Shown: in pieces, positions 293 through 31,217 of the stretch | How the letters are laid out: each line of letters opens with the position of its first letter | Numbering within the stretch: position 1 is the first letter of the stretch | From: Bugula neritina | Lineage: Eukaryota > Animalia > Bryozoa | Reading direction: 5' to 3' | Length of the DNA: 31,329 nt | NCBI GenBank assembly: GCA_964035545.1 | Contig: CAXIUT010000274.1 | Location: 1 to 31,329 of the forward strand | Notes under the pieces: generated by a model | The model's input: only the letters and a program-made list of their open reading frames with translations | The model's database searches: none | Told to the model about the DNA's origin: nothing | Position numbers and translations under genes: made by a program

Positions 293-967
293 TCATCCCA
301 ATCTAAATGGATTGAAATCAATAGAATTGCTATAAGGCAAATAAGAATTTTATCTTCTCCAATTTTCATTTCCCCAACTTTGAAAAGGATATAACTGATT
401 CACTTCTAAACTCCTTCCATACTATTACTCAGTCATAATAATAGTCTGAATACCAGCTATACTAGTCTGACATCCTTGTTCTTGTTGCTGTTTTTCAACT
501 TTAAAGCTTTATATATTTTCTTGTATTTCGGGTTCATTCAGGGAAATACTTGAGTTGGACTGATAATCTTTAAGGGCAGAAAGAAATGAAATTCCAGACA
601 ATTCTAATTTGTTTTTTTAGTTTTTAATGATTTTATATGGATACTTATATATTTTTTCATACTTCTGATGATGACTACGACATTGGATGTCGGTTTTTGA
701 TTTCACAAAAGTACACATTTCCTTAAAAAAGTTGTTAGAACTACATTAATCATATTATTACTGTCTAATACCTTTCACTTTTGCTTTTTCTTTGTTGAGT
801 TATAGAAAAATAAGGTACAATAGATGCTACTGATCAGTCCAAACTCGGTTTTTCCAACTAATTGGTTAATTATCTTTATTTTTTGATTTTAAACCTTTTA
901 CCTCCTTGAAATCTACTCCAAGATTAGAGATCTGGTCTTAATTATTAGATTATTGATGAGATTCCAT
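293..967 (-). CDS. Myb-like (SHAQKY-class) DNA-binding protein, ~217-224 aa
   Basis: With TAR=Glu, open from ATG 967 to TGA 293: ...WKNRVWTDQEHLLYLIFLE...FFKEMCTFVKSKTDIQCRSHHQKYEK, matching WTxxEH...QxRSHxQK. Candidate in-frame 21-nt intron at 741-761. Confidence 0.88.
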
Positions 968-1340
968 AGGTTTTTTGTTGTTATAACTTAAACTTAAAAT
1001 ATCAAAATACTAATTTAATTAAACTAGTTAAACATTTACAGGTAACAAATTACTTTAAAGAAGAATAAATATTAGATAAGAGTCTATATTTCAATCACAT
1101 TCTTTTAGTTTGAATCATTCGAATCCCTAGTATCTAATTTATCTTTGAACTTCTAAAAAACTATTAATAACCTATTCCAGTAATAAATTCAAAATTTTAT
1201 CTTATAAAAATTCATTGAATAAGTCTATCATTTTTATAGCAATAGCTATGATTATCATTGTTTTACCCCTTTAAATCTAGTGAATTGAAAATAAATAGAT
1301 AAATATCATAATTATATTATTTTGAATATTTGATTCAATT

Positions 1341-2524
1341 ATGACTTACCACCAAAAAGACAGCTAAATGTAACCCATCAAACAGACCTAACAATTTTAA
1401 TAAAAACAATCAAAATCATATCTAGATCCAAATAAAAAACTTCTCTCCTCAAACATCAAAACAATCGCCACAGCAATCCTCATCATAGTATTGATAGTAA
1501 TGTCAATACAAATATACAAACTAAAATAAAATATCACAAAAACAAACAAAGAAATCCTACAAGTATCATACTCAATAACACAGCTACAATCAAATCAATA
1601 CGTCTACAATGGCATCAATGTCAACGGAAAACATCTGCTCACAGAATAACACGATCACCCTCAACTGACTTTTCCATATCCAACAATAGGCATCTCCAAT
1701 CCAGGCGACACCTACAACAACACCTTCGTCAAAGATAAATAATTTTATTAATTCGATTAAAGATTAATGGAAATATTCAAACCCTACAACGTATTTCAAT
1801 GTCTATCCAGGACACAGATTGCTAGTACGAAAGAATGGGTTCATAGCACGATGGAGGTTACATCGTTTGCAATAACTATATGAAAAAAGCAAAGGCTATG
1901 ATAAATTTTGGAATAAATGCTGAGGATTCATTCGGATGCTAAGTATCGCATAAATATGATATTGTCAACCATCAATACGACTGCTCAGTAGAACATGCTC
2001 CATCATGCAAATATGGAACTAAAAATAATCTATTCATGAAAGTATGTTCAGGCGATATCACTTAAATCACATAGAAATACACCTTCCAAACCTTCAAAGA
2101 TATCATCGATAGCAAACAACTCGCCAACAAACATATCGTTCTTAAAATAGATAATGATGGAGGATAATATCCCACTCTTAGAAGCTTACCTGTTTAGTAT
2201 CTCAAAAATATCGATCAAATTTTTTATTAGTTCCATCTCAACTATACCAAACCATAGACTTGGGGAGATCTTAAAATATTCTAAACCCTAGCATAACACT
2301 TTTATAGTGTCAATTTCCATATGAACAACTATGGCTGCTATAAATACTTTCCCTTCTTCTCTAGTGCCAATATGAGAAAAATGCCTTCCTGGGCATTCGA
2401 AGGAACTCTCGTCAATAAGCAACTTCTACAAATAAAGTAACCCACCAGATCTTTCGTTGAACATAAACTAAATAACATCAATGCACCAACGCTTAAAGAT
2501 TGCCAAATCATAAACAAGGAATGA
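1341..2524 (+). CDS. Type II membrane SAM-dependent methyltransferase (METTL24/Methyltransf_22/FkbM-like), 387 aa
   Basis: N-terminal TM helix (IATAILIIVLIVMSIQIY); motifs RMGSEHDGGYIVC, INFGINAEDSFG, HQYDC, VLKIDNDGGEY, QIFYEFH, FHMNNYG. A 20-nt intron at 1791-1810 restores the frame. Confidence 0.85.
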
Positions 2525-2680
2525 TCTTATTAGCAATTGTATCTAAACAACTATTTTGGATATTAAATACTTTAATATATTAAATCTTCATTTATAAAAT
2601 GTAAAATGACATTTCTAAATGACATGACTGATAGTTATGATTTGTAAAAATAAAAATATGATTAAATAAAGATAATTTTA

Positions 2681-3942
2681 TCATTTTTTGCATTCTTGAG
2701 GACCCTCTCCAACATCAGTCAACCAAATTCCTCGAGGATTCATTTTCATACCCTTGAATTCACTAAATCCATGTTCTTATTTATCTGTTTTATTTAGAAG
2801 ATCCTTTGCCTTCTTATTGAGTATTTCTTCTTGCTTTCCAAAGATCTCAAAAAGATACTTTAAAACTTTATTAACCATATTTTAATGGACAAACAAAAAA
2901 GCATGAGGTCCAGCATCAAAAGTGTAAGCCACTTTAGTTTATTTGCTTTACTTATTGATAATATGGTCTACTATATAGATAATCTGTTTTGAAAACTAAT
3001 TTAAATAGAATAAAGGAGGATAGCTGTCCAAACAAACAGCATGAAAATTATTACTATCCTAAATACAAAACTATTTACCTTAATAATAATTTATGCTAAT
3101 TTACTAAACTATTAATACTATCTTCCTATATCTTTGTTCTCTTTCTTTCGTACTTAGTTAATAGAATCAATAGATTGTACTATCTTTTAAATTCTTTAAT
3201 TGGCTATTTAATTCCGATATTTTATAAATTAACTAGTCTATTTCGATATTCTCATCCCGTTCGATGAAGATATATCTTTCTCTTTATTCTCAGTCACCAA
3301 AGCTATTATTCTAATAAACTACAATTCCTTTGAATCTTTTATTGATTGACTTATACACTTATTACTCATCTACTCTAACTACTATCTGGTTTCTTTATAC
3401 CCAGGAGTCAAATATTTTTTGTCGACTCCTTTCCACTCAACCAGCCCACCATACAGAGAACGAGTAGCACTACCAGATCCAGTTCTGGCAACAATAGACA
3501 ATTATTGTTGGGTAAAAATGGAGCCAAATAGATTGTTGAGGGTGACAGCCAGACATGAAAATCCAGAAGCAGAAGATGCCATACCAGATGCAGAAGGAAA
3601 GGAGTTAACCGATTATATCTTAAAATGATAGGAACTCCATTCTTAATCACTAAAATTTCTATATTTTTATTGCCACCTCACTTTATCTCTAACCATATTT
3701 AAGACTGAAACCATTCTATTGGTCATACTTTTTTGAAGTCCATTAAGAATAAAGATATCATTTTTGTATTATTTTGAAAAATGACAAGAAGTGGTCGATG
3801 ATAAATCATCACTATTGATAGTCAAACCGATAGATGAATTATAAGGAATCATTCTTTACTAGTTGTACTTTCCCCAGTATTTTATCAATGCTATATTTGG
3901 ACTTGACCTGTATTTTGCAGAATTCATCACCAATTTTATCAT
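2681..3942 (-). CDS. MVD: Diphosphomevalonate decarboxylase (GHMP family), 413 aa
   Basis: SPNIALIKYWGK, ESVNSFPSASGMASSASGF, ARTGSGSATRSLYGG, DSNNFHAVCLDSYPP, VAYTFDAGPHA, TDVGEGP. 20-nt intron at 3059-3078. Alternative in-frame ATG at 3927. Confidence 0.97.
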
Positions 3943-4099
3943 TTTAAAACGTGTTAGATCTGATATTTATATCACCTATTTAGTATTATTCAAATCAAAT
4001 CAAACCAATATATATTAAATATTAAACATATATTCTATCAGCTTTTATTTTGAATGTTAATATTTAACTTTATTTTAATAATAATTAAAACTCATAAAA

Positions 4100-4636: not shown

Positions 4637-4644
4637 TTGTATTT

Positions 4645-4773
4645 ATAATTAATATCTAAAAATAATCATTCATATGTTTAATAGTAATCATTAATATGTC
4701 TAATAGTAATCATATATATGTTAATAATAGTCATAAATAAGTAAATTAATAATAATTAATATCTAAAAATAAT
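4645..4773. repeat. 22-bp perfect direct repeats enclosing three degenerate ~20-nt tandem units
   Basis: ATAATTAATATCTAAAAATAAT at 4645-4666 and 4752-4773; interior units ATATGTTTAATAGTAATCAT / ATATGTCTAATAGTAATCAT / ATATGTTAATAATAGTCAT. Confidence 0.85.
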
Positions 4774-4784
4774 AAAACAACAAT

Positions 4785-5219
4785 ATGTAAAAGTAATAAA
4801 ACAACAATATCACCATTCAATAAGCACAGTAAAAGCTAAGATTGTTTGTTAAATAAAGATAATGGTAAAAATTCCATACCCCCAGAAATCTACTTCTCGC
4901 TCTAGTTGGATAAGTCGGATAAATATCAGAAATATTCCAATGGAAAGGATAAATATCCAATGGATTAACATAGTTTTCAAAATAAGAAAAAGTACATGTA
5001 GGATAAGAACTAGCTGATGTCCTAGCCTATCTTGTCAGATTGTCAGATGTATGTGGAATTGATCTTGGATAGGCATTTTTGAATAAGATGTAAAAAAATG
5101 AAAAGAAGTATCCGAAAGATCTAGTCCGTGGAAGTTCAAAAAAATATACATAATATAAAGAGAACTACAAGTAGAGATAAAAAGATAACTAAAACAGATA
5201 AGACAATAATAACAATTGA
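4785..5219 (+). CDS. DCTPP1: dCTP pyrophosphatase 1 (MazG-like all-alpha NTP pyrophosphatase), 144 aa
   Basis: FVKEREWEKFHTPRNLLLALVGEVGEISEIFQWKGE...HVGEELADVLAYLVRLSDVCGIDLG...KKYP...GSSKKYTEY; conserved Glu residues are TAA-encoded. Confidence 0.96.
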
Positions 5220-5239: not shown

Positions 5240-8200
5240 TCATTTCCCATACGCTCTCAAACTCTTCAACTCGTTCTACAAATGATCCTGCTTCTCCTTT
5301 ATCTCTCCTTTCACCTGCTTCACATTCGAAAACGAACTCTACCAATTGATAGCTTCAATGCTTCTGAAATATCTATCGTTGTAGTGGTATTTCACATTGT
5401 TAGGATGGATTTTTAAATTAGAAATTATATTTGGAAGGAAGTAGTTGTTGAAGTTTATTGGTTTAGAAAAAGAATGACTAGGATATTGATTTATTTGTAA
5501 GGCCTATTTACTATATTGAGTGTAGTTTCGACCTTGCACAGATGATTCGACAGCTTTCCAGTTTTTTAGTTATCTAACTTGCTCCTCAGTAAGATATTCC
5601 TCACCTGAATAACTATATTTATTACCATTTCCATCAGGATAAATAACGAATAACCTTGGAATAATAGAATTTTGAGGTTGAGGTAAAGAATAATTTTGTT
5701 ATGGCACATGAATGCCAGATCCATATTAATTTTTATTCTAACCTGAATCTTTTATATTAGATGAAGCAGCTATTTCGTTTTTACTATTCCCATCAACTAT
5801 CTAATAGAATAATTACTTCTCACTTTAAAATAATTAGATTCTTTATCTTTAGTCGACACCTCTCCTTACCTCAAATTGACATCATAAACTCCCTCTTGAT
5901 GATTATCTATCTAGGTAAACAACTGGCTCCATCTTTCTTTCAACTATTCCTCTTAACAACTTTAAACCTTATTTATAAACGTAATCAACCCCTTTTCATT
6001 CACTTTTATCATAGAACTATCAGGATATGCAACCAGGACAACAGGTTAGTCAGTAACAACACCCTAACGATCAATTCTTTCAGTATATCTATGACAACTA
6101 AAACATGGATGGTATAATTCATAAAGCTAGCCATTGTAGCTTCGATCAAGTAAGTCAGAATAACCAATTTTAGAAAATTATGATCCGCAACCAATGATAT
6201 TAGGTTCTTTATTATGACCAAGATTTACACGGATTATAAAATTAGAATGATTCACTATTTAGAATTTATCAGAACCAAACCATCTGATAATAGTACCATC
6301 TTTAAACATTATTAACCTGTCATTATTTTTATATTGAACAAAAGTAGTTGAATCCTCTCGAATTCTAATCTTCTTATCTGTCTCAACTGTACACTCCACC
6401 TTCATCTCCCTTTATTCACCCTAACTCGATATCATATTGTGCTTGATATGAGTCCAAACACCAAAACTCAAGACAGATACATCTCCATTCGGATAAAATA
6501 TCTATATATTGCCATTTTTCAACCTTTTAGTGATCTATCCTCTAGATCCAAAACTTCTACTCTCCTCAAGTTCATTACTACACCAATATATAGTAGGATT
6601 AGGATCAAATGCTATATTAAATTACTTATTTTGAAAAGATAAACGAACAGATTGACTATCTTATTAGGTGTAAACTGATGTTTTTAAACTATTTTAATAT
6701 TTATAAAAAAGATTGCCTCTAGATATCTCATGTAAACCATATTATATATTGTCTTTATTCAAAGTTATTAGTCTTTTCTCAGTATCTCCCATGCAATATA
6801 AATTTTATGTTATTATAGTATTATCTGTAGGCATCATCTTCTTACCCAGTATCTTAAGATTACCTGTTTGTTTCCAATTATAATCCCAAAAAGTTTTATT
6901 TTATTTTTCTTATCTGAAATACTAATTCCAAAATTGAAAGTTAGGCAGTACTTTCCAATCAAAGATATGATTTTGGTAAAGAAATCTTCCTGGAGGATTG
7001 ACTCTAGCCAAAATAAGTAAATTATATCCATCATCACTACATTCTCCATAATATACCTTAGGATCATATTCTAATTATTGATTGATTCTTGAGTTTAGGT
7101 CTTTACATTACAATTTTTATACATATTTTCTATTATCAAAAGAGTAGAATATTCTGTTAGCCAGCTTATTGCTCAACTATGTGAACTGTTCAAGTTTATA
7201 TTAATATTCTAATCCATGCTAGAAAGGAGATTTTTTAAGAATAGAAGAAAGAGGAATAGATGAAGGCATTTTTTATGCTTTGAATTTTACTTTGAAATTA
7301 AGTTCATTTGATGTTGCAGATTCCTTTATTTATGGCAATTTATCTTTAAGATTAGCCAAGTTTATTTTGTTAGTAGGTTTGTTTTTATATTTATTCCATA
7401 ACTATGAACCTATTTCTTTGATACTTGTTCTCTTCTCATTGCTTTCTGTTGATATACTAATAGAATCAGCCAAATCATCAAGCATCTTATAGTATATGCT
7501 CATACTATTGGCTTTTTTCTTCTGACTAGATATTCTTTTATAGGTTGAAAGATCACTTTTAATGTTCTAAGGAAAACTTTCATACTTCCTCTAAATAACC
7601 TCTTCCACAATCTATGTTACAGGAGGACCTGTTTCTTTCTTCCCTTTCTTGTCCTCTTTTTTCTATTCGACAACAACTTCTTTCTTAATTGTCTACTTTA
7701 TAGTTGGAACCATTGGTGCTACAGTTTGTTCTTTAAACCAATTTCCATAAACTTACTTATTTAAAGATAATTGACAAAGTTTTTTAAATAATTATGATAA
7801 AAATTGTTGACAATCTTCTTCTGGATGCTGAAGATCTTTAAGAAAAGGAACTTCGATAATAATACTATTTTACAAAGAACTTTCTTAAGACATTCTTAAC
7901 TTTTTAATAGTTTGAATTATCTCCTTTTTAGAAGCTTTTTACTCTACATTTTCTTTTCTTTAATTTTTTTATTGTTCAGGTGATGTTTTATTGGCCTCAT
8001 CAGGAACATTTTAACTATTAAGCAAATCCTATTTTGGCATACCTGATCCTTCTTTTACTTTTTATTATACCCATACAATCACCTCAGGTTTAAGACCTCC
8101 CTTAATAGCTGTCTACAGACACTATTTATCAAGAGGAATATCCAGATAAAATAAAAATTCTGTAACTGCCTTCTAGAAATCAAATTATATTGGTTTTTAT

Positions 8201-8564
8201 GCCTCCTCAACAACTTATTACTTTTTAGGATCTTTCTTTGCATCTTCTAAATACCATCATAATTACTTTTAGGATCTTTCTTAGGATCAACAGGTTTTCT
8301 CAACTGAATCATATACTACTGTCCAACTGCATTTAAATTCTAACAAACAAAAAGCTATCCTTCTCGATTCAACTTACCCTCCTAAATATACTTTTATACG
8401 CCTTTTTATTTTGACAACTAAATCAATTTGTCCATATCTAACACCTTCTTAAGAGTAACTGCTTTCTTCAAAGCCTACATAGCATTTGGACTATCAACAA
8501 CTACAGGAATAACACTCCAAACAATAGCAGGAGGTAGCTACTCTTCTTGCTTCTTGGGTGGCAT
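5240..8564 (-). CDS. SPAG17: SPAG17/PF6-like ciliary central-pair protein, ~1087 aa
   Basis: MPPKK start and KDPKK repeats; blocks MMPTDNTII, EESRSFGSRGEITKRLKNGNIEIFYPNG, REDSTTFVQYKNNDRLIMFKDGTII and PRLFVIYPDGNGEEYL resemble PF6/SPAG17. Introns at 8247-8266 and 5797-5816 (20 nt), candidate at 5605-5625 (21 nt). Confidence 0.8.
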
Positions 8565-8608
8565 CAGTTTCCTTTTTGAATTATAATTATAAATATAGGA
8601 TATAAAAA

Positions 8609-10260
8609 TCACACCTCTATCTTCTCACAACCAAACATATAAAACCCCTACTTAGAATAACTGCCATAAAGACAACAAGGATATTCACTTTATTTGACCT
8701 ATAAAGATCGCTTTATACCATCAAAAGAACCAGCTTTGATAGTTGTTCCTTTGTCACTAGTTGCCATCAATCCCACAATCACATTATTCTTGAAATAACA
8801 TTGAAATTGTTTGAAATAATCATCTTATTCAAGGATTATTAACTTTCCATTGACATTTTTTTCATTTTATTTTTTATATTTATGTGAAATTCCTTGTTTT
8901 TCAGTATCATTCACTAGATAAGTAGCTTAAAATCCTAAAAATTGATTTTTATTCTAGAAAAAAGTAAGACCAACAATAAATGCCTCTCTCTGACCTATTA
9001 TTTTTCGATCATTAGCAATACTATACTTCTTATTATGCTTACCAACCTAAGTACTCTAAAAACAATGCTAAAATTAGTCATTTTTATTAACATTTGTTTC
9101 ATTTATGCTCTAATTTTTGAACAATATCTTCAATTGATTTAAACTGATCTTTTTCTTTCTTTACTGGAATGTCTACTAGCATTCTTATAACTAATAAATC
9201 AATTATTACAGCTATAGAGTAGATTGAATCGACCTATTTTCAGCCTCTTCCTTTTCCATTTCGAGCTGCATCACCTTTTTGTTCAAATCTTTTTGAGTCT
9301 TTCTCAAATTCATGATATCACTCTTCAACTTTTGAAACCCTTTCTTGCTCCTATCTTTAATATTCTCAGTTACTCGTGATAAAGAAGCTTAGTTTTGATT
9401 GACTTTCTCTCCAGTTTCGAAATATACCTTCAAAGAAAACAATTGGTTCTTATCATATCCCTTACTCAATAATTTCTGCTATAATTTGAATATCTTCTGA
9501 TTCTAAGCTTCATAACTTCCATCCTGACCTCGCTCTTACTCTTCCTCTAATTTCTGTTGATAAGTTTTTACTTCTTTATACAATCGACTCGTTTGATTAG
9601 CATATTCTGTTTTGATATGTCCGTCTTTAAGTAACTTGATGTATTCGTTTGATTGCCTTTTAGATTAACTGATTTATACTTCTAACTTTCTGACTATTTC
9701 TTGCCTTCGACCAAGAATGGTCTCAATGGACCTGGTTCTAAAAGTGTTTGAGCTCTTACTTATCGACGATTGTACCTTCATGTTAGTATACTTTTTATCG
9801 ATTCAAGATCAACTCTCGAAATTGACTCAACTCTTCCTCTACTCTCTCCAACTCCTTTCTCAAACTTTTATAATCAAGTTAAGGTATTTTTTTAATTTTC
9901 TTATTCCCACAAGTATTCAAAATATCTTCGACTCTATCCACCTCTTTTTGCAATATCCTATTTTTCTCTCCTAATTCTTAAATCATTGATTTTCTAACTA
10001 ACAAAAAAATGATACTTTCTTATCGAAGATGGAGATTAGGCATATCTCTGATAACTTTAATTGATATTGATTGTATTATAGCTGTTATTTACGTTTATAT
10101 TTTTATTATTTGGGACGGGAGTATTGATAGGAGGAAGAAATTAATTTTATTAACTATTAAATTATGAAATATCGAGACGATAACGATTGTCTTTAGGAAG
10201 GTTTTTTAATTTTTTAGGAGAAGAACTGTTTAAAGTTCTTAGTGTCCTGTGGGTTGACAT
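8609..10260 (-). CDS. Coiled-coil protein with C-terminal jacalin-like (beta-prism) domain, 535 aa
   Basis: Long heptad-rich region, then IVGLTFFENKNQFLGFEATY...LEEDDYFKQFQCYFKNNVIVGLMATSDKGTTIKAG...CLYGSYSKEGFYMFG. 22-nt introns at 9994-10015 and 9738-9759 are needed for the frame. Confidence 0.72.
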
Positions 10261-10525
10261 TTATATTTTGTAAAATTATTTATTTACATTAGATAACTTA
10301 TCTTGATTACATCATATTCAATATTCAAATAAAATGAAAAATTCTAGAGCCTTATTCTATTATCAATTATGATTTAAAATATATATTTAAAAAGTATTAT
10401 ATAATATATTCTTTTCTTTTCTTCCTTGACTTTCTAAAGAATCTTTTATTAGTTATACATTAGTATTGATATACATATTATGGTTGATGAATTTATTCTA
10501 TAATATAGTTAAAATATATTTAAAT

Positions 10526-12497
10526 ATGAAGAAAGCAGCTAAAAAAACATCAACCAAGATGGTTGTTGATTAATACTAAAAATACTTCAAAGGAAACGAC
10601 TACTGCAAACCATAAAAATTCGTATAAATTAATAAAATGCATCCCTGCAATCAACTCTATCATTAATAACTTAGATAAAAACCCAATAAAATCAATCATA
10701 AATATCAGCATGACTATTTATAGGAGCAATAACATTAAAAATAATAGAAAAATGTATATATTTCTATAATTTAGATAAATTAGCACTTCTATGATATTAA
10801 AAGTGATGATGATGACGATCATTTTTCAATGTTACTTTCACAACAAAGAAAAAACAATCGTTCTTCAAGAAATAAATCAAAAAATAATGCTTTTCCTTAA
10901 AAAAAATAAGATATTAGATTTCCACTTAAAAGTTATAAATAAAGTTAGTATTTCCCACATAACTAATATGAAACTTCATATATGTAGTAAATCCCTATCA
11001 AACAAAAAAGACCACTATCTTCAGCAGTCAATAAAAATCAAAGATCAATTCCACAAAAAACATAAAAATAAAAATAACCTAAACTAAAAAAGACCCTTTC
11101 TACTTCAAAATTTAAATAAGATAAGAAAAGAGTCAATAACTCATCTCATAAAGATAAAAATAACTTACAATCTCTCCATATTAAAGATCTAAAAAATATA
11201 ACTATGAAAAGACCATTGAATAGTCAATACCATGAACCTCTTTTAAATAAAATTAAAAAGAAAAATGTAAATTTTGCATCAAAAAATCTCAGAATCGAAG
11301 ATTTTCAAAAAGGACCTACAAATAATAAAAACAATAACGTAGCTTAAAAAATATACTTCAAAAAATAATAGTAAAAACCCTCAAAGCATAAAGATTATAG
11401 AATATATTAAGAATAAAAAAGATAAGAACCAAGAATAATCAAATAAAGAAGATAAAAACAACATTCTTAGAGATCAGAAGGATAATCCAATCGATATAAA
11501 AACATAAAAATGAATAACAAATAACCTATCTTTAAAGAATAAAGATAATAAAGACTACCATCAAGAAATAGAAGATAAAATATCGTTCATAATCATCCCA
11601 ATAGATCAAAATAACATTAACACAGAAATCAAAGGTAAAAACAATATTAATAAAGAAGATAAAGAGGTCAAGCAAGACACCAAGAACCATAATCTATTCG
11701 AAGAAGATAGCCAAATCGAAGAATTCCAAGAAATAGATAAGAATAGCATATTAGAAATAGAGAAGAATAAAGACCTCAAAGAAATAGATAATAACCAAGA
11801 GGAAATAAAGAAAGATAGCAATAAAGACCCAGATTAAATAGAGAACAAGAAAGACCTAGAGTTAATAGAGAACAAGAGCGACCTAGAGTCAATAGATAAC
11901 AATAAAGACCACAAAGAAATAGATAACATGAACAAAATCAAGGTAGAAACCATAGAAACCCTAGAAATCAGTCATCAAATTCAAGAAGATCTCCCAACCC
12001 AGGTCATTTCTTCAATTTTGTATCAAACAGTATAAACGAACAATTATCACTCATGAAGTACTAATCATTTAACTCAGTAGTCAATTTAGCATGATGTCAA
12101 ATGTCTTTTAAAACTTCTCTAACTTTGTAAACATCAACATCGATACCCAAGGAAACCACTTCCATATGAGTTCAAACATGTAATCCTCAGACGACTACAA
12201 CTCATAAACTTCATAATCATTTTCATCAGACTATGACTAATACTACGAAGATGATTCCTAACCAGAAGGCCTAGATGAAGAACAACTGAACCAAATCAAA
12301 AACACCATTTACGTAGCTCCAGAACAAGGTGGCATTCAGTACCTTTGATATAAAGTAGATGTACGATTTGTCTGATTGATTTGAAGACAGGCGAATAGGT
12401 AAAGAAGTTATATTGTGAGCATACTTTCCATAGCGATTGTATAGATTAGTGGTTAAAAAGGAAAAATCATTGTCCTTTATGTCGAGATAGACAATGA
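10526..12497 (+). CDS. RING-H2 E3 ubiquitin ligase-like protein with long low-complexity N-terminus, ~636-643 aa
   Basis: C-terminal GLDEEQLNQI...CTICLIDLKTGEEVKKLYCEHTFHSDCIDEWLKRKNHCPLCR. 20-nt introns at 12058-12077 and 12339-12358; candidate 21-nt intron at 10754-10774. Confidence 0.9.
11810..11917 (+). repeat. Four 27-nt coding tandem repeats (consensus NREQERPRV) inside the RING protein
   Basis: Units start at 11810, 11837, 11864 and 11891; a more degenerate copy lies upstream at about 11754-11790. Confidence 0.85.
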
Positions 12498-12591
12498 TAA
12501 ATGATAATCTATGAGATGTAGAATATCAGTAATATAAATTCATTTTTATGATGGATATTTTCTTCCATCGATAGAAGTTTATAATATATCA

Positions 12592-14508: not shown

Positions 14509-14552
14509 TCTTCATTATTTTTTAACATTATTAATTATAGAACAATATATTA

Positions 14553-16567: not shown

Positions 16568-16596
16568 GATTAATTATAATTATGATAACTATACAA

Positions 16597-19500
16597 TCAA
16601 ATAGGTATTTGCGTAAAATACTTATTTATATTTTTAAGCATTCTCGCTTTATAGACAGGCGCCTCAACCACAGTAGCTGCAGGTCCTTTCCACATATTCT
16701 ACACCCACTATCCAGTCCCATACTCACGCATATAATCCACCACTCCGATCTGAAAACGGTTCCCATCAAGATAGTACTCTTCAGAATTTTAAATCTCTAT
16801 CACCAAAATCAATGAATAATCAATGACGTTATTTTAACAAAGATAATCAACTGTTGCAGATAGATCTTTGATAACATTGTCTTTGCAAAATATTGGTTCA
16901 CTAAAACGATCTATCAAAAAGTTGATATCAAGAGGTATTACTGGAGGCTTTGAAAATCTACGAGTCACTGAGCCCTTGAAATCAAATAAATACCAATCCT
17001 TCATCCCGAAAAATAAGTTTTACATCACGAAGTAATAATCTGTAGTCATGCCTCTCTCTACGATAAAAGCACCATAAATAGGAGTCAACACACTACCTTC
17101 ATGCAAATGAGTAAAATATTTAGGCAAAAACTTTCTAAAAGTCATAAACTCTCCTTTTTGGACCTTTTTGATAACCAAAAGATCATTATATGATCTCATA
17201 AACGATGAACCTGACTTTCCACCTGTAGCCATCCAAGCATCAGCACCAGCAATAGAACTAATAAACAACTCTATCGGAATATTATTCTTTCTTCTCAAGA
17301 CCTAAAACTCATTAGGAAATAACAAAGTAATACTCAAACTTAAACTAGAAGCTTATTTTTTTATTTTGTTCTGTACATCAAATTTTTTTTATTGAAATTA
17401 AAGCAAAGCGATCAACTTCTTAAAATCTTATGTGTCCATCAATAACTGCTCAGCTTATAGATATTTTGTTATTTTCACAGTTAATTCATTGTGAAATTTA
17501 AAATCTTATAAACAGTCTTTATGTTCTTTGCTGTTCAATGCAGCCACAATCAAACTTTGAGGCTTTGTTACAAAACAGGGAATAAACTAAAAATAACCTT
17601 GGTTAAATTTTAATGCAGATGAGATATACTTAAAAGTTTTATGAACCTCTTCTTCAGCTATTTTAGATGATTTTCTAGCCAAAATGTTTGATTCTGTTTT
17701 CCTATCATTTCTAGAAATAACCTGTTCTTCTTTACTAGCATAAGGCTGAAGCCATCCATAATCAATTACATCAGGATTAGTCGATTCAGCTGTCTGATAA
17801 TTGGAATATAACTCACTTTTAGATATCTAACTTGTTGAAAGGTCACTTTAGCATGACATGCTATTAGTTTCACTTATATATTCATTGATATCCAGATCTT
17901 CAAGCAAAAGATCATTATCGAAATCTTTAGCCATGTATTTCTGGTCAAGTTCTCTCTTTTTAACTGATTTTTTCACCTCATTGATAATTACATAACATCT
18001 TCGTAGTAAACTCATAAAGACAAACGATATTTTCAAAGCTTCAAGAAAAGAACCAATTCTTTTATTATTCAACATCAACTGAGCAATATTGTTCACCTTT
18101 GATACCTCTTACACCAACTCAGGTATGATAATATCAATGCATTGAGCTTGAGATAATCTAACATCAGGACTGCCCACAATCGAATGCCGAGCTTTAATGA
18201 AACTTGATTTAGGGTTTTTAATAATCGAATCAAATTTTGAATTTTTGGATAGTTCTGCAATAGTCTTTATTTATTCAAAAAGATAGTCCATCAACCTATC
18301 GATTTTACTCGCCTATAAAAGACTAGATCCAATTATCGCCCTTTGTTCCTTATTTTTCAAAAACATCTACCTTCCAGTTGCAGTCAACACACATTGTCTA
18401 TTCAAAGTATACTTTCCCACATAAAATTTAACAGATTTATCTCCAAGTTCAAATACTCTCACCTTTTTCGAGTGCTGACATATTATACTTTTATTTTTAA
18501 TTGATGTCTTCTTGCCATTGTTCTATCTGATGATCGTTTCTGTTGATCCTTTGAACATATTTTGAAGAAAGTTCAAAGTACTAAACTATAAATCTTACTT
18601 ATAGACATTTTGTCTTGTAGAAATAGGTTATTGACAATCCAAACACTCAATCAAACACTTTAATTTGTCTCTAGAAGGATATTTTTAAAGATAAGAAAAT
18701 ATCATTTCCATTTATTAATTTTTAACTGATTCATCTATCGAAGTAAAAGAAGAATAACAACTACTTTCGCATTATCCTTCATCAACTATCATCGACTAAG
18801 CCCAAACTCTTACATACTGGTCAGTTGAATAGTAAACATCCGAATGAAGATAGTTAGGACGACAACAAATTGAACACTTCTTATCCAATCCAGTCAACTT
18901 TTTGAGAAGATAACTACCTAAAGGAGCATCTTCTTCAGAATAAAACATTTGATGATAATCACATGATTATGAACATATTTAAGTGAAGTTAGGCCATTTA
19001 TTTTTAAACGATTTGGTTCTTCCTTTGATATATTCTTCAAGAGCACCTTTATTAACTTCAGGATAGTTCGTAAAATCGCTTTATACATAGGTTATTTGTT
19101 TATAAGTCACATATTTTTATTTAATGTAACTCAAAATATCATGATGAAATTATGCATAAAAACTAGAAAACATCTATGGATTGTTCAAATAACAATCTTT
19201 CCTCATCTGCTATGACATAGAATTTAGAATATTTTGGTCCATCTTTACCTTATAAACCTTCAACTTCATATGAGTCAGTGTCTGCAAAATAAACCTAAAC
19301 TACTTCTTAAGATTCTAAAGTAACTTCTGACTAGTATGTTTAATAATAAGAGTCAAACCTAACTCATCTTTCATAGTATGCACTTTGAAAAACTTTTTAA
19401 TTGCATTTCCTTACTTAGCTGAAGTATAAGTAGTTGAAGTGATCTTTTTGATAAAACCTGTTATCTGTTTTTAAGGATATGAGTATACTTTGCCTATGTT

Positions 19501-20531
19501 ATCAACTATTTTTTATATTTTAAGAGAAACTTTCAACCTAGAAAGATATTATACCTTTACCTTAGGAATAACCGTTATTGAATTTTATATCAACATATCT
19601 TAGAATTCTTTTTCAATTATTCCTTACAAAAATATCATGTCTATCTTAACTCGTTGACAGTATACTAAGATTTTATTCATTTCTTTTAATCTATAGTTAA
19701 TCATATTTTAAAATGAGACTTATTTATCTCCTCCAACCAAATCTTCAGACTAAATATTACCAAAAACTAAAATACAAGTCATTTTCTAGTATTCTTATCT
19801 TATTTTTTTAGATGTAAATGCTTTCTTGATAAGAACAATTGGTTACAAAGAAAGTGAAAAGTCTTAACCCCAAAACCCTTTGATTCTAATATTTTGACAA
19901 ATGTTCATGTTTCCAGTTATAACAAAATTAGGTGGCATTCTACTCACTATTTACTGAGCTTTTTCGTTTATTTCAGGTAAATATTTCAAAGGTATCTTAG
20001 CTTGTTTCAAAATAACTTGCAAAAGTACAATAAATCTAACATTAATCTCTTCTTATAACTTCTTTATTCCATTAATCTCATTTCCAGTATACTCCTCAAT
20101 AATACTTTGAATCTCTTTGAGTCTATCCTCTTCAGAAAACGAAGAGCTTTTACTCTCTTGTTGTATTTCTTAAATATTAGAAGGCAAATCATCAGTATAT
20201 TAATGCTATCCTGATTTTCTGTACTATATGTATTCATCATTATGTTTGGCAATATACTTCCAACATTTTTGAATACAAGCCTCACACATTCTAATTGACT
20301 TCTCAGGCATCCCTAGATCTTTACCAGATAGATTAAAATCAGAACAACTTGATATGATATCATATACCTCGCACAAAAGATTTGACCACAGTATCGACAG
20401 TGATGTTTTCGTCTGTAAAGAGTATGGAATTTTTTATCACATTTAAAACAACTTGTTACAGCCTCGTCTTTAACCCATTTCTCTTTTGTACAAAATGATG
20501 CCTTTATTATTTTTTGAACCTATTAGTTCAT
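16597..20531 (-). CDS. FAB1: 1-phosphatidylinositol-3-phosphate 5-kinase (PIKfyve/Fab1), ~1304 aa
   Basis: N-terminal FYVE domain (WVKD...CFKCDKKF...[17 protein letters not shown]), CCT-like and Cys-rich middle, kinase motifs [25 protein letters not shown] and IGVVDYMR. 20-nt intron at 20348-20367. Confidence 0.96.
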
Positions 20532-20652: not shown

Positions 20653-23264
20653 ATGAACCCCTTCAGACATTCGCATTGTTTCAGCAAATGCCAACTAGAA
20701 CTCATCATTGACACCTACCTCAGCCAAGGACCCTACTACAACATCCTCCTCAAAGCCCTACAACTCAACATGCAAAAATATTAACAACTTTCTGATCCTC
20801 ATCGCAATGATAAACCTCACCCCATCCGCATCTACGCCAGAGACCATCAATGCAACAAAAATATAGTTGATTAAGATATCTAAATGTTAAATTCTTAAAC
20901 AAAAAAAGATACAAAAACTACCCATTCATCATCCAGTCTTAAATATTACTATCTCTATCCTCTAGAATATGTGATATAAATATTAGAAAGCGCACAGTTC
21001 TACAGTCTCCTACCCAGAGATATCATTATTAATCAAGTACTGACAGGCACTAACTTACAAATCATCATAGAAACATTAACTATCGTCAGTGAAGATATGT
21101 GCAAAAAGATAAGAATGACAATTGCAGGAAAAGAACTAGTCAACCCTTCAACTCATCAAGATAAAATCATTTAAGAGGCAAAAGAAATTAAATATCAATA
21201 ACCTCGTTTCAGTAAATAAATCAACTAGAAAAGTTTTGTAGATATCGAAGTTGATTAAGATGAAGATTAAGATTAAGATGAAGAAAGTAGAATAGATATT
21301 GAGCAATCAAGTAGGTTTATAAAAAAGTAAATATCAGGAACAAATAGATATATTAATATTGATAGGTAAATAGATTAAAAATCATGTAGGTTTTGTCAAG
21401 GATATCTCATCTATTTATATTAAACCATCGGATAAAACCCTCTAGACTAAGATATTAATCGTTTATCACCATAAACTATGAGATGTTTAGGTCTAATATC
21501 AAAAGCTGTAGCCTATTTTACCCTATATCTAACATAAACTAACAAAACACATGTCCCCAACGATATCAATATCATCAATAGAGTTCTCAATTCGCTAGGT
21601 TTAGTTATTACTGAATAGATATTCGCATCAGAACTAAATCCTAAAGTTATCCGGCCTCCAAAAGTTTCACTTAAAAAGCCTTCTAACTTGATATAGTAAT
21701 TATAGCCTTATTTCAAAAGTATAGAAAAGAAGAAGAATAATAGTTAATATTATGAGATATCTTAATTATTAAGAATGATCATTTATTCTCCAACATGCTA
21801 AGAAGTGAAATAGCAGTTAAGAATAAGTAGAATATAAACTTTTTAGAAATAAACTATCAGTAAAAATTATGATCATTAAGAAAAAGCACAACAACTTTTG
21901 AAAAAATAATTAAAAGATATGAAATAATACTAAAAATAAAGACTTATCATAGCTTCAAATACAGTAAATAATAAACAAATCTATCGACAACTAGGATTTC
22001 CAGAATAAGTAATTCCCAATCAACAACAAACTAAACCTAATAACTACAATGCTATGAATTCATCTAAACTCAATAATTCTTCTAAATTGTATGAAAGAAA
22101 TCAAAGTAATTATCAACGTTTAAGTCCTAGAAACAATAAAAAATAGAATAACTTTTTAGCTATGGAAATGTCTAATTCTTTTATGAAAAATTCAATTGAT
22201 GAAAAAAAAATGAAGAAAAAAGGTAATAAAAATAAAAATACTAATTAAAGAAAAAATACATCAAAAAAATAAGATAATATTTTCTCATAATTTCAAAATT
22301 CAGGTTTATTTGCAGTAAGCAATGCCATAAAAAACAATCTTATCAAAAGAGCATAAAGCCAAAACACACTAACTACTTCAGTTGACATCACTTAAAATCC
22401 ACAAAAATACTATTCCGATCAAATAGATGAATAAAATTAGTTACCTGATCATCAATTTAGAAAAATCCTTTACAATTCTTATTCAAAGAAGTATAACATG
22501 AATTCAAAAGCTGATAATAATTTTGCTGGAACTTCAAATAACGTCAATCCTCAAGCAATTCTATCTTCAAGTATGAAGCTACAAACTAAGAAAAGCAATG
22601 GATATACTAATAGTTCTTTATCTCATTTTATTGGCAGAAAACAAGAACAAGAACAAATGGATTGCATCTAAAGAAAATAAAAATAATTATTCAATAAACA
22701 ACTTCTCAATGGCTAGTTCATCAAAAGTATAACATATTATATTTAGATGAAGTATATCAAGAAATAAATAAAGGAGCAGCATAGATATTTACAGATTATA
22801 CCAGTACTATGAGTCTAATGGACAGTTTAAGACTATTCAAAAGCGGAGGTATGATTTTGATTAATATAGGACCAATATATACATAATATAACACTAAAAC
22901 ACAATTATCTACTCCTAATTCAATAAAACCAAAATAAAAAATAATATACTAAAATAGTAAAAAGTATAATCATACTGGTATAATCAGAAATTAAAAATAC
23001 AACAAATCCATTAAAACTGAACTCATCAATCACAGACAATAGTTTTTACAAATCTACTAAAAATAAAATTAGAGCAAATCAAGATTACTAAGAGGACATA
23101 AAAAAGATAAAAGCAGCTAAAATAAACCTAATAATAAAAATTATAAATAACTATATTAAATATAACTACAAAAAGCCATCAACAATAGAAAAAGTTTATA
23201 AATGGAATAAAATTAATCAACATAATGGAGTCAAAATGATTTCTATTAAAGTTTATGTCAGTGA
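20653..23264 (+). CDS. Hypothetical protein, ~856-863 aa
   Basis: About 690 codons are open before the first intron (22727-22746, 20 nt); candidate 21-nt intron at 22849-22869. Contains an acidic DEDEDEDEDEE tract and a CxxC. No family recognised. Confidence 0.75.
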
Positions 23265-23335
23265 TAATATTAATATCATAGCTTATTAACATATCATATT
23301 GTATTTGTTATTTATATTAAATTAACTTGATATCT

Positions 23336-24043
23336 ATGTTTGAAGGACTACTTTCCAGCAGTATCAAAAATATCAGAGAACTCGATGAGATTAACAAACA
23401 CGATCGATTCTATCTTCGCTACTATCTCACAGTCAAAAGAGCACGAGCCCTAAATTAAAAAATATATGGAGACAAAAAAGATAAATCAGGATAATAACTA
23501 AAAACAGCACATCCTCTCAGAATCGCTTGCCTTACAGAATAAATAAAAAATCAAAAAATATCAGATTACCACATGACCTGGCTACTAGGGCTGCTTCATG
23601 ACTCGAAATAAGATAATTTACTCACCTACACAGAACAAATCGATGAAGTTCTTATGGATTTAAGACCAGAATAAAAATAAAAGTTGATGAATTATATCGA
23701 TCAACTCACTTCAGAATAATGGAAGTCAAAAGGATAAAAGAAAGCTGATCAAATACAAAAGATGGAAATATTGGAATTGATTCCCAGTTGGATTAGAGTT
23801 TTTGATAAGTATGATAATTGTCGTCGTTTTAGAAAGAATCCAGTAGGAAATTCTAAAAAGAAAATCGATGGATATTTATCAGTTGCCTATCTTTGCTACA
23901 AAAGAGCATGTTAACGATATGAGTAAATATAGAAGAATTTACAACATTATATTCATTAGTTTTATCATGATATTTTGAAAGATATCGGAGGATTACCTAA
24001 AATCAAGGCTACAGCCTAGGCTTACATTGAATAGAATAAGTGA
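23336..24043 (+). CDS. MESH1/HDDC3-like stand-alone RelA/SpoT-type HD hydrolase, 235 aa
   Basis: YGDKKDKSGEELKTAHPLRIA...LGLLHDSKEDN...QLTSEEWKSKGEKKADQ...IRVFDKYDNCRR parallels the HP, LHDxxED, LT and DKxxN motifs of RSH hydrolase domains. Confidence 0.85.
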
Positions 24044-26577: not shown

Positions 26578-29500
26578 TCATTTTTGATAGTTGATAATGA
26601 TCAACTCAGACTTCAACTCTTGCATGATCGTATTCCACACATAATTGCCCATTTCAACCAATACTTCTGTTTCCTAATCATCATAGAAAAGCCATCTTTC
26701 TTAGGATTAAACTAACTAAGAATATTATATTATTTACTTCGTTTGCAAGCATTCGAGATAGCCTATCTTCTCGAATTTGCTCGATATAGGAGTCAGAAAT
26801 CTTAGCTGAACCAACCAAACTTTACTATTTATCAGCTAAAAGACCACAAACATAAGAACATTGCTCAGCTACTTTATCAACACTTTTCTTCAACTTTTAT
26901 TCAAGTTGATTTTCAGTCAAAGTTCTTGAAAAAGATGCACACTGCTTCCAAGGAAAAGGAGCTCCCCAAATACCATAAGGTCTTTCATGATCTAAAAATT
27001 CATTCATTGAATCAAAAAGAGCTCGATTGTGAATATGCAAAATAGTTTTAAGAAAGCCAACTCTTGCTTATTATTTATCAGCATCATCATAATATTGTTA
27101 GAATTAGAGAGTGGGAAGCAAACTTTGCTGGAACTTTTAAAATGCAGTCACTGGTACTATAAAAGTTGGAGCCTATTCTTCCTATTACTTGATTTAATAA
27201 TCCCCTTCATGCATATACCTCAACATTTATAAAGCACTTGGACCCATTGGATTACTCAAATTATTTAAAGCTGTTTTATGTGTACCTATATTATAAATAA
27301 ATTACGAAGCAAAAAGCTCATAAATCTTTTCAAATATTCTTTAATAACATTCAAATTAGTCTTAACTCCTTTCTTCTTTTTAGCCTGATTCTGTGCCCGA
27401 GTAACAAAACCATTTATTGATTTCATGATCTTGTTTTAAGAACATGGTTATTGATATAGTTCAATACATAAATCTAAGAAGATAAATTAGAAGATATCTT
27501 CCTTATCTTCAGCACAACAGTATTTTAGTTTTGTATCGAGATTATTAAAATCTTTATTGCTTCCAATTTATTTATTAATTATAGCAATTTATTCATCAGA
27601 ATATCCTTCTTCTTCCAAATCTCTTTATACCTCTTCATAACTAATATTATCACTTGAATCTTCACCACCGAAGTGCTAATGCTTCATCTTTAGCAATCTT
27701 TATTTAATAGCTTACATTTCTTAAGACCTTTGAAGAGATAATTCTTGACTACCTCCAAGAACTTCACTCATAGGTGATGGATGGATGTTCTACTCACTGT
27801 TTACATCTTATTAAAATTCATCGTCATAACCTTAAATATCTTCTCCTGATTTATTTGATCTTTATTTCCTTGATGGCTGTGAAATAGAAGGCTAAATACT
27901 TTCTTCTTAACTTTAACTTTAATTTTAGTTGCTTTATTGTTATTTCTTTGGAATTAAAGATTCTGCTTAAGTTGCTGCAGGTTTTCTCAAATAGGTTTAA
28001 CTCAAACACTTCATCATTTTTCCAGCTGCACTTTGCTATTAATACTTTCTAGAATGAATATTCTTATCTAAAATTCCTCTTGCTTATCGATATCCCTGCC
28101 AAATACTTTTCTTTACTTTAGATATTTCTTAAAGTTCCTTTTTAATCCATTTCAATATCCTCTATTTTTACTTTTAATACTACTTCGATGATAACTGATT
28201 AGACTATCTCTTCATCTCCAAAAATCCCAACTATTTTTATTTCTTATTTAACAAATTTTACTTCCTCTGCTTCAATGCAGTCGATATAGTTTCCAAATTC
28301 AACAGTTTAATATCTTAATTATCTTCAGTAGTATATTCTTATCTAAAAGAAGCAACATCTTAATCCTATTTTTCTTATTATTTGGCCAGAGATTCATGGT
28401 AGTACTCCTTATACAACTATTTTTATTTGTTAGAACTGTATTTACCAGTAAACTACTCATCTATTTCTTTGCTTTTACTATTTTGAACAGTTGCATCTGG
28501 AATCAAATCCCTCTGAAGATCATTTTTACTTCTCTACAAAAATGAATAAACCTAGTTCAAAACAGTCTGAGTATCAGCCTACTCACTTTTCATATTTTTC
28601 TTTATAAATTCAAGAAGATATCCCCACTTTTATATCTCCTGCTTTTTCAATTATTGTAACTTTATTCTTTCAAGTTGACTACTCAAACCTCCCCTTTCTA
28701 TTTATGATGACATAAATGGTCTCATCTTATCAACAGATATATTTGACTAAGACTATTTATTCGTATTCTAATTTTATTGAATAAATTTATTAGATACTGG
28801 CTATTATCTTTATTTCAATTTATTTTTCAATTAAGATTCAAACAAATTTTCCATTTCTTTTGATAAAACATCTCTGATGTTCTTTCTTTTTTATCTGTTT
28901 TCATTTTAAACTTCGCTTGGAAAACTTATATTCAATTCTTGTTATATCTACTCGACACCATCTCTCTTTTAAGACTGTTCACTAGCAGCCATCAACTGAA
29001 TATAAGTCTAAATCAACTGAGTTGTATCCTCTAGAACTTCAATATTGACAGCTTACTTCCTAGGCTACCCTCTTCTAGCTTTCTTTTAATAGAAGGCTAT
29101 TTCCTCAAGAAAATCAATTGAATGATCAGTCTGGATATGAATTCTTTCTCTCTTCTTTGAATAGTATGGGATTTAAGATTCTTCTATCTCGCTTCTAAGA
29201 ATCGAAGCAGTCATAGATTTTAAACTATTCAATTTGTCAACAATGACATTTTGTTGAGAAGAATCTCCTCGAATTTATTTATCTGATCTTGAAGTCAAGT
29301 TTTTCTTCTTAAGTTTTTTACGACTAGTAGAACTACTCATACTTTGTGGCACTTGTAATTGATATGGTGATTTGCCCTTACTGAAAGAAGTGCCCAATGA
29401 TCTTTTACTTAACTAACTATTCACTATCTTGTGAATTATATTCTTCAAACTATGATTGTAGTGACTCTTCTTATTACTTTTTACTTAAATAGCTGCAGAT

Positions 29501-29972
29501 TTACTTGCTCCCTCACATAAACTCTTCTTATACACTTCTCCTTAATATTTAGAATAACTTCTTTTTTTCTTAGTAGTCTAAACTTTCTTAAAAATCTGAG
29601 TCTGCATAAGTATTTTATGTTTATTTTTTTGACAAGTTTCAACATAACTAGGTCTACTTGTATTGATATCCATAGAATTTCTTTTAGACTTCCTTTTGTG
29701 TCGTATATCATCCATAGGTTGTAAATACTCAAGATCCTTATTGTATGTATTTCTGTCAGTATTAGAAGGATCAGGAGTTCGAGGGTATTGACAATTACAA
29801 ACAGTACTTTTAGGTTGGATATTATCAATATTGATTTTTTTATCTTTCACTCTAAATAATGAATCATATACTCTGGAGGCAATCCGTTACGACGACCATT
29901 GATATTAAACTAGATATTGATGTTTAAAGGATTATGTTAGTTAATCTGTTGATTGTACTTACTTTCACTCAT
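26578..29972 (-). CDS. Coiled-coil protein with C-terminal CEP350/DUF4378-like domain (probable basal-body protein), ~1110 aa
   Basis: C-terminus QIREDRLSRMLANELVESEERWLFYDDEETEVLVEMGNYVWNTIMQE resembles the CEP350 C-terminal W..YD.E motif. Introns at 29852-29871, 27286-27305 (20 nt) and 26716-26737 (22 nt) give a spliced length of 3333 nt. The central part was not read codon by codon. Confidence 0.8.
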
Positions 29973-30125
29973 GGCTGTTATATTATCATTATATCTCACT
30001 TTGTCAAATAACTCCAAATATTACACAAAATCACTTTGAATTTAAAAAACTAAAAAAATAACATGGAACAAAAAAGACAATAAGAAATAAAATTAAAGAA
30101 TGTTTTATGATATTGATATACAAGA

Positions 30126-31217
30126 TCAATGAAGAGCTTGCTGAAGATAACGACGATATGTTTGAGTTAATGGAGAACTATTACCTAGTTATTTGAAAAT
30201 TGAAAGCATTTCTTTGTTAGCTTTTTTATCTTACCAGTTTTTATTGGCTTTGATAATAGTCAAAAGGGTCTACAAACACTATTCTACCATCTAATTCTAT
30301 CGATAATACTGAGAAGCCTCATATTTTAAACTTAAATTATCTGGCTCTGCCTATAGTTTTTTCTTCCAAGTAACTACTTCGCTATTTTATTCTTTTTCTT
30401 TCTAAAAAATTTAACAGGTTCGACATAGATGCCCATATAACTATGCAAACTATGGTTTTTATATATAAAAGACCTAATTTTGTTTCAGTACCTCTACAAG
30501 AGCTTTCAGTTGAGCCATCTTTCCAGACTACGAATAAGAACAAGCAAGAAATATATCCCCCACTAACTTGTACTCCTGAGGCACCTTTGAGTATTTTATG
30601 CCTACTAGCACCTTCTAAGCACCTTAATAGTCTTTATCATTGAGTAATATTTTTGCTTGTTATAAAGCTTGACCCACCTACTCTCGTTCTTTATCTCCTT
30701 GCGAAGCTTTTCCTGCGCTTTAAAGAAATTTATCAAGGTTTTAATTTGAGATTTACCCACTAAATGCATCTATTGCCTTTCCACCATAAACCATAAAAAC
30801 AGTTGGAACTGCTTTTATTTGAAAGGCTTGAGCTATTTTTCCAAACTTATCGATATTAATTTTTAAAAGTTTAAGTTTTCCTTGAGAATTTTTAACTTTT
30901 TGTTCAAGCATTGGTGTCAACTTTTTACAAGGAGCGCACCAATCAGCATAAAAATCGATTAATAGTGTTTATTTAGTGGTAGAAATGATCTCCTGCCAAT
31001 CTTAGTATCTTTCTAACTCCATTATTTATTCAATATTTTTTGCATAAAATTACTTGGCTTCTTGTTTTATTCGATTCAATTCCTCTTCAGTTGGTGTCTT
31101 CTTATGCTAGCTAAACGAGGCAAGATATGGTTTGAGCAAAGATGAAGTATTAATCCATTTTGTATTATTTTTGACGATATTGGGTAGCAATCTAGTGAAT
31201 CTTCTGATATTGAACAT
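30126..31217 (-). CDS. CnoX/YbbN-like thioredoxin-TPR chaperedoxin with mitochondrial-type presequence, 363 aa
   Basis: MFNIRRFTRLL... presequence; IDFYADWCAPCKKLTPMLE...FQIKAVPTV...IDAFSG; TPR tail EAEPDNLSLKY...LLTIIKANKNWEDKKA...LGNSSPLTQTYRRYLQQALH. Confidence 0.9.

Follow-up and report, generated by a model that had tools for sequence, protein, structure and literature searches.

What do the codons TAA and TAG mean in contig CAXIUT010000274.1 of the Bugula neritina genome assembly (GCA_964035545.1), and from which organism does this DNA come? The contig (G000:C283; 31,329 nucleotides (nt), 28.5% G+C) is considered here as a whole and is referred to below as the window. An earlier note, made from its letters, had proposed that both codons are read as glutamate and that TGA is the only stop. 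We find this proposal supported by the codons of four related ciliates, by conserved columns in distant homologues of PIKfyve and alpha-tubulin, and by comparison with the release factor eRF1 of the host animal.

Each end of the contig is an 84-nt telomere, (CCCCAA)n at 1–84 and (TTGGGG)n at 31246–31329. Because C4A2/G4T2 repeats stand on both ends of a whole contig, we take the window to be a ciliate macronuclear chromosome that is complete from telomere to telomere. Judging from the sequence, the ciliate very probably uses NCBI translation table 30, in which UAA and UAG specify Glu and UGA is the sole terminator. This code, with its single terminator, is already known. In the following, TAR stands for TAA or TAG, GAR for GAA or GAG, and CAR for CAA or CAG.

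Reading Frames

When TGA alone is treated as a stop, the longest reading frames in the window have 1279, 954, 902, and 733 codons. In 200 shuffled sequences the longest such frame averages 446 codons and never exceeds 693. If TAA and TAG are counted as stops too, no frame in the window is longer than 121 codons.

The TAR codons on which the earlier note had built its case are all in frame. The TAA codons at 4911 and 4920 (LALVG[TAA]VG[TAA]ISEIFQW) and at 5004 (VG[TAA]ELADV) belong to the reading frame of a dCTP pyrophosphatase-type domain, that at 17020–17022 on the minus strand to the PIKfyve gene (YYFVM[TAA]NLFFG), and that at 23609 to an open reading frame (ORF) that had been named an HD hydrolase (LHDSK[TAA]DNL). 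The same holds for the TAG codons at 827–829 on the minus strand (VWTDQ[TAG]HLL), at 2228–2230 (DQIFY[TAG]FHL), and in the SK[TAG]TS motif of mevalonate diphosphate decarboxylase (MVD), which is located at 3238–3240 on the minus strand (MRISK[TAG]TS).

Domain matches run through many such codons. The MVD gene (2681–3999, minus strand, stop TGA at 2681–2683) matches TIGR01240 with 149.8 and 51.7 bits, reading through 8 TAG and 10 TAA (18 TAR inside the HMM match), and also matches PF22700. Its exon 1 ends at 3079 and its exon 2 starts at 3058, the two being joined (…IIIK / DSNNFH…) across a 20-nt GT..AG intron at 3059–3078 on the minus strand. The PIKfyve/Fab1-type kinase gene (16597–20519, minus strand) is identified by matches to PF01504 and to FYVE, its nearest named homologue being the Paramecium 1-phosphatidylinositol-3-phosphate 5-kinase. 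The FYVE exon ends at 20368, the PIPK domain occupies 16600–17301, and the main ORF contains 40 TAA and 18 TAG. Here too the intron has 20 nt and GT..AG borders (20348–20367, minus strand), and its removal restores the FYVE finger (…CGQIFCAS / CSDFNL…). The MazG-like (dCTP pyrophosphatase-type) domain at 4929–5219 on the plus strand is read through 2 TAG and 4 TAA to a TGA at 5217–5219 and matches PF12643 with 33.6 bits against a cut-off of 27; TAA 5004 lies within it, while TAA 4911 and 4920 are just upstream in the same frame.

Codon Meaning in Related Ciliates

Relatives were found by a HMMER search with a 93-residue piece of the PIP kinase, the matches being short standard-code fragments on metagenome contigs with up to 82% identity. 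Syntenic contigs of four related ciliates with 38–45% G+C were collected from these sources (ENA ERZ27237461 k141_396969; ENA ERZ27233560; JGI 3300045973 Ga0485830_0001472; Logan SRR35489367 and SRR31730567); individual relatives are labeled R1, R2, and R2b below. All TGA-delimited frames were translated, an X being written for every TAA and TAG, and aligned by blastp, and the codon pairs were read off.

The aligned coding sequence of the window comprises 5,399 codons, of which 236 are TAA, 107 are TAG, and none is TGA. Opposite the TAA codons of the window (354 pairs) the relatives most often have Glu, encoded by GAA or GAG (141), followed by TAG (32), Asp (29), TAA (25), Ser (22), Lys (14), and Gln (13). 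Opposite TAG (165 pairs), Glu is present in 62, Lys in 12, TAA in 12, TAG in 11, and Asp in 8. The GAR-encoded Glu codons of the window have the same profile as TAR, their partners being Glu (202), Asp (51), TAA (39), TAG (31), and Gln (23).

In a likelihood test, one relative was used per window codon and one codon was left out at a time, the substitution profile of an amino acid being drawn from its remaining codons. All ten sense codons used as controls (GAA, GAG, CAA, CAG, AAA, AAG, GAT, TAT, AAT, and TCA) are named correctly. TAA is assigned to Glu, the runner-up Asp being worse by 113–120 ln units, and TAG is likewise assigned to Glu, with Gln as the runner-up, worse by 42–46 ln units.

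The composition of the genes agrees with this result. Together, GAR and TAR make up a constant share in the window and in the relatives (e.g., 5.1 + 6.3% vs 6.6 + 3.5%), and CAR stays at about 3%. TAR makes up 343 of the 612 Glu codons of the window (56%), and TAA is the commonest Glu codon in this AT-rich species. At individual sites, the PIKfyve TAA at 17020 faces GAG or TAG in the relatives and the TAA at 23609 faces GAA in R2b. In MVD, the two TAR codons after KYWGKYN face GAA GAA in the relatives and Glu and Asp in the host, and the TAG of SK[TAG]TS faces GAT or TAG in the relatives and Glu in the host.

It is instructive to consider in this light the standard ciliate code (table 6), in which TAA and TAG mean glutamine. 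Paramecium, the source of the nearest named homologue, uses that code, which would fit, and a few TAR codons do stand opposite Gln, such as a TAA in the ciliate eRF1 that aligns within VQQRLKLY of the host, and 13 of 297 TAA pairs in the relatives. Gln is, however, no commoner opposite TAR (4%) than opposite GAR-encoded Glu (6%), the Gln assignment is worse by 132–134 ln units for TAA and by the 42–46 given above for TAG, and the CAR content shows no trade-off against TAR. Together with the alpha-tubulin columns described below, these results lead us to reject table 6 as highly improbable.

The same data bear on the split code of Oligohymenophorea sp. PL0344, with UAA as Lys and UAG as Glu. 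This code exists in the same class (PMC10553269), and, in its favor, the tRNA genes found here have the anticodon CUA and none has UUA. Against it, TAA faces Lys in 14 of 297 pairs and Glu in 141, and Lys is outside the four best amino acids for TAA in the likelihood test. Moreover, TAA and TAG interchange freely among the relatives, with 32 TAA-to-TAG and 12 TAG-to-TAA pairs. We reject the split code as the least credible of the alternatives. The earlier note's dismissal of both the Gln code and the split code is thus borne out by the codon pairs, the likelihoods, and alpha-tubulin.

Termination

The conserved context of a codon was defined as at least 5 of 12 identities with the relatives on each side. 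In such contexts 91 distinct TAA and 45 distinct TAG codons are found, and no TGA. All 13 of the ORF ends inspected in the window are TGA, as is the end of the beta-tubulin gene on contig C10, and the PIKfyve stop (TGA 16597–16599) is conserved in R1 and R2. The TGA codons that appear in looser alignments are either common stops (e.g., YFTQIPI-TGA, present in R1 and R2 as well as in the window) or come from the wrong frame of overlapping exons. One of them, a TGA opposite TGG at 8494, was considered as a possible sense codon and rejected, since it belongs to the wrong frame of an overlapping ORF. Tables 27 and 28, which lack a dedicated stop and in which UGA is also Trp, were discarded for this window in view of the absence of TGA from conserved context.

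A context-dependent code was also considered, in which TAR is Glu inside genes and TAR or TGA has a second meaning elsewhere, as in Condylostoma and the karyorelicts, or in which TGA is sometimes Trp or Sec. Gene ends read from genomic sequence alone are compatible with rare termination at TAR. The contrast between 136 TAR and 0 TGA in conserved coding context and the uniform use of TGA at the ORF ends argue against such a dual meaning, which we regard as very unlikely.

Conserved Columns in Distant Homologues

The assignment was further examined in columns that are conserved over larger distances. The PIKfyve column of VM[TAA]NLF (17020–17022) has Glu in 69 of 86 homologues. A Codetta-style score, computed for 21 TAA columns from PIKfyve and MVD, ranks Glu first (+9.7), followed by Ala (+2.0), and disfavors Gln (−8.8).

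The classical evidence for the peritrich code, TAR at invariant Glu columns of alpha-tubulin, is reproduced here. Two alpha-tubulin genes of the ciliate (C87, 775–2259, minus strand of L098; C16, 1113–2498, plus strand of L099) contain 19 in-frame TAR, 6 in one gene and 13 in its paralogue. Of these, 13 fall in columns where at least 10 of 120 eukaryotic alpha-tubulins have a residue, and 12 of the 13 are in columns with at least 94% Glu: 10 of 11 for TAA and 2 of 2, with at least 95%, for TAG. Gln reaches at most 2% in the TAR columns, which speaks against table 6, and the TAA columns speak equally against a Lys meaning of UAA. The Mesodinium code (table 29, UAR = Tyr) was rejected because Tyr does not lead either opposite TAR in the relatives or in the alpha-tubulin columns, while the control codon TAT is correctly called Tyr.

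The beta-tubulin gene (C10; 1516–2841, minus strand of L097) has no TAR in its 441 codons, compared with 6.4% TAR in ordinary genes of the window. These tubulin counts suggest that TAR is avoided in the most highly expressed genes.

When the eRF1 of the ciliate (C314) is aligned with that of the host, 8 of 12 aligned TAR are opposite Glu, the others being opposite Gln, Pro, Ser, and Arg. The eight include the sites of the invariant Glu in FEPF, RLRxEKRHNY, GGENG, and AIE, and for TAG 4 of 5 are opposite a host Glu.

Candidate Decoding tRNAs and eRF1

The earlier note had pointed to tRNAs with UUA or CUA anticodons and to the N-domain of eRF1 as the places where such a code should leave its mark. 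The contigs that carry the genes described here resemble the window in their telomeres or in using TAR in frame. Pattern searches reveal two tRNA(CUA) genes on ciliate contigs, C10:16787–16858 (plus strand) and C256:3981–4052 (minus strand), each followed by a T-run; contig C10 also carries a C4A2 telomere. The pair scores 57.2 and 62.2 bits against the Rfam tRNA model, and the two genes are identical to each other at 54 of 72 positions. The acceptor stem of the C10 gene contains a mismatch (A4·A69), and the gene is Glu-like in its 5′ UCC start and its T arm and Gln-like in its anticodon stem. No tRNA(UUA) gene was found in the part of the ciliate genome that the assembly contains. A search of the whole assembly with the Rfam tRNA model, in which 63 of 18,702 candidates were scored, returned mostly host tRNAs, and a covariance model derived from the pair of CUA genes did not bring up any further ciliate tRNA.

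The eRF1 gene of the ciliate (C314, 1540–2874, minus strand of L093) has 16 in-frame TAR. The protein retains GGQ and YxCxxxF and is altered at two stop-recognition motifs of the N-domain: it has QIKD where the host has NIKS, and NG-SVV where the host has NGTSMI, so that the GTS loop is one residue shorter. The NIKS, YxCxxxF, and GTx motifs have been implicated in stop-codon recognition (PMC3632111). A possible mechanism would be that Glu is loaded onto the CUA tRNAs and onto a tRNA(UUA) that escaped detection, which would then decode UAG and UAA, and that the altered eRF1 would no longer recognize UAR and be restricted to UGA.

Weighing the Glutamate Assignment

A number of observations pull in the other direction or fail to contribute, and they have to be set against the results above. 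First, the two tRNA(CUA) genes give no Glu assignment by sequence. Their identity to the host tRNA-Glu is 51 of 72 and 43 of 72 positions, and to the host tRNA-Gln 52 of 72 and 44–45 of 72; the C10 gene is about equally similar to the Glu, Gln, and Lys tRNAs of the host, and the covariance model built from the two genes places the host Glu, Gly, Asp, Lys, and Gln tRNAs within 3 bits of each other. Second, three anticodon-loop/T-loop patterns and an ARAGORN check did not find a tRNA(UUA) in the assembly, which holds only part of the ciliate genome. A pattern search for nuclear tRNA-Glu or tRNA-Gln of the ciliate gave only host genes, one gene on C73 (19% G+C, probably mitochondrial), and one in a bacterial-type cluster on C214.

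Third, in the 8 TAG columns of MVD and PIKfyve, which are few and variable, Lys scores +1.8, Glu −1.2, and Asp −2.1. The MVD alignment consists of 39 MVDs fetched with a 206-residue open frame, and most of the MVD TAR sites are in variable columns of it. The pooled MVD counts misleadingly favor Lys or Asp because they are dominated by two columns, in one of which Pro is conserved and in the other Asp, and we relied on per-column scores instead. Fourth, to compare the three dCTPase sites at 4911, 4920, and 5004 residue by residue, an orthologue was found neither at the syntenic place in the relatives nor, as DCTPP1, in the host. Finally, the membership of the organism in Peritrichia is a matter of likelihood, to which we now turn.

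Identity of the Ciliate

The assembly that was searched is that of an animal, with 216 Mb in 321 contigs. On its large contigs C1–C9 the tRNA genes are of animal type, an rDNA array is present, and the genes are rich in introns; the ciliate is therefore a passenger in an animal genome project. The ciliate chromosome has been left in the animal assembly by its curators, as contamination or as an epibiont, and parts of the same DNA are found in sequencing runs that bear the labels of two other organisms and belong to two further studies. Some further contigs are of foreign character as well. C73, with its low G+C and organelle-like tRNAs, may be the mitochondrial genome of the ciliate; C214 has a cluster of 11 tRNAs of bacterial type; and C135, with two 16S/18S universal sites 167 kb apart, is probably from a bacterium.

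The ciliate is likely to be a peritrich that lived on the sequenced animal or in association with it; we infer its membership of Peritrichia from several indirect lines. Peritrichs are well-known epibionts of aquatic animals. The reading of UAR as Glu is the peritrich code, for which a single origin has been deduced, from an ancestor of Oligohymenophorea with UAR = Gln (PMC11687900, PMC10553269). The 20-nt introns of the window fit the tiny introns with a narrow length distribution reported for three peritrich genomes (PMC13685798). The closest named relative of the PIKfyve, from Paramecium, fits an oligohymenophorean, which need not be a peritrich.

The alternative is that table 30 is correct and the organism is not a peritrich, so that UAR = Glu would have originated a second time in another oligohymenophorean lineage. 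It could draw on the results of the placement attempts. No ciliate 18S was found in the assembly, the universal 1391 site occurring nowhere but in the host array of C6 and on contig C135, and alpha-tubulin gives no placement because it is too conserved (plants score 94%). Named peritrich proteins were not among the search matches, the nearest named homologue, determined for PIKfyve only, being that of Paramecium, and all closer relatives are metagenome fragments without names. Peritrichia is, however, sister to Paramecium in some phylogenies (PMC10553269). Given this sisterhood and the lack of a peritrich proteome in the named databases, a Paramecium best match is what would be expected from a peritrich. 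Since UAR = Glu is known only from Peritrichia, a second origin is unlikely in our judgment, and the peritrich is preferred.

A more specific version of the alternative would be a non-peritrich in a class where UAR = Glu arose twice, or a deep, unsampled lineage related to the peritrichs, common in freshwater metagenomes. Such a lineage could have taken its own route to UGA-only termination, with the QIKD eRF1 and with a CUA tRNA whose host-Gln-like anticodon stem and Glu-like acceptor start and T arm might be a remnant of the proposed switch from Gln to Glu. We consider this scenario to be somewhat less probable still, and retain a peritrich as the likely source.

Gene Content of the Chromosome

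The chromosome packs at least 13 genes, on both strands, into 31.3 kb. With regard to the functions proposed earlier, the names MVD, PIKfyve/Fab1, and MazG-like dCTPase domain stand. The name Myb has a weak match only (E 0.06), and neither methyltransferase nor HD hydrolase finds Pfam support from stop-free pieces. The weak Myb-like ORF is at 293–1090 on the minus strand, ends at TGA, and has 14 TAA and 3 TAG in frame, among them the TAG at 827–829. The ORF earlier named a methyltransferase (1334–2524, plus strand), which holds the TAG at 2228–2230, also ends at TGA and contains 8 TAA and 6 TAG. The ORF earlier named an HD hydrolase (23240–24043, plus strand) is a real conserved gene, with 58% identity to R2b.

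Several other genes are recognized by their conservation. A large gene whose function is not named extends over 5392–8624 on the minus strand as two overlapping TGA-free frames (5392–8256 and 8079–8624) and has 42–45% identity to its R1 and R2 orthologues. Next to it, the ORF at 8609–9802 on the minus strand has 13 TAA and 13 TAG and is 37–40% identical to the relatives; the corresponding identity is 34–35% for the ORF at 12505–14508 on the plus strand, which has 49 TAA and 10 TAG and shares its TGA stop with R1, and 41–48% for that at 16022–16663 on the minus strand. The ORF at 26681–27460 on the minus strand is 60% identical to R2b. Close to the right telomere, a thioredoxin-domain protein is encoded at 30126–31109 on the minus strand, with a PF00085 match on the piece 30756–30968 and a TGA stop at 30126–30128. 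Long low-complexity ORFs rich in Lys, Asn, and Glu occupy 10430–15998 on the plus strand and 27256–29964 on the minus strand. They have the peak TAR density, up to 9% of codons, and only 12505–14508 among them is conserved in the relatives.

The gene order from PIKfyve to MVD is kept in the relatives, in which a chitin synthase and a PI3/PI4-kinase gene then follow. Past MVD, the window has the unnamed ORF (1334–2524), the Myb-like ORF, and the telomere. As the genes beyond MVD differ between the window and the relatives, the site of chromosome breakage differs as well. Nothing corresponding to the MazG-like gene is seen at the syntenic place of the relatives.

Comparison with Known Codes

The window shares its code with the peritrichs Vorticella, Opisthonecta, Carchesium, and Campanella (table 30), in which UAA and UAG are likewise Glu and UGA is the sole stop. 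It differs from these cases in being a passenger in an animal assembly, in its AT-rich genome, in the use of TAR for more than half of its Glu codons, and in that we infer its place among the peritrichs. With the standard ciliate code of Tetrahymena and Paramecium it has in common UGA as the sole stop, the reading of UAR as sense, presumably by suppressor-type tRNAs, and C4A2 telomeres, while the amino acid is Glu instead of Gln. PL0344 has the same meaning of UAG, tRNA(CUA) genes, and the UGA stop, and differs in that its UAA is Lys (PMC10553269). All tRNA(CUA) of that species are 69–93% identical to tRNA-Glu (PMC10553269), whereas those found here are about equally Glu- and Gln-like.

Since table 30 is already known, the code in itself will not surprise a specialist. 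What the present analysis adds is that many ciliate chromosomes with telomere caps are present in an animal reference assembly. Standard annotation misses them or shreds them into fragments of 20–100 amino acids, as can be seen from the public gene calls for the related contigs. Together with the metagenomic relatives, these contigs constitute multi-species, codon-level material for a code with few sequenced genomes, including an eRF1 with an unusual replacement of NIKS and candidate decoder tRNAs. If the lineage should turn out to fall outside Peritrichia, it would represent a second origin of UAR = Glu.

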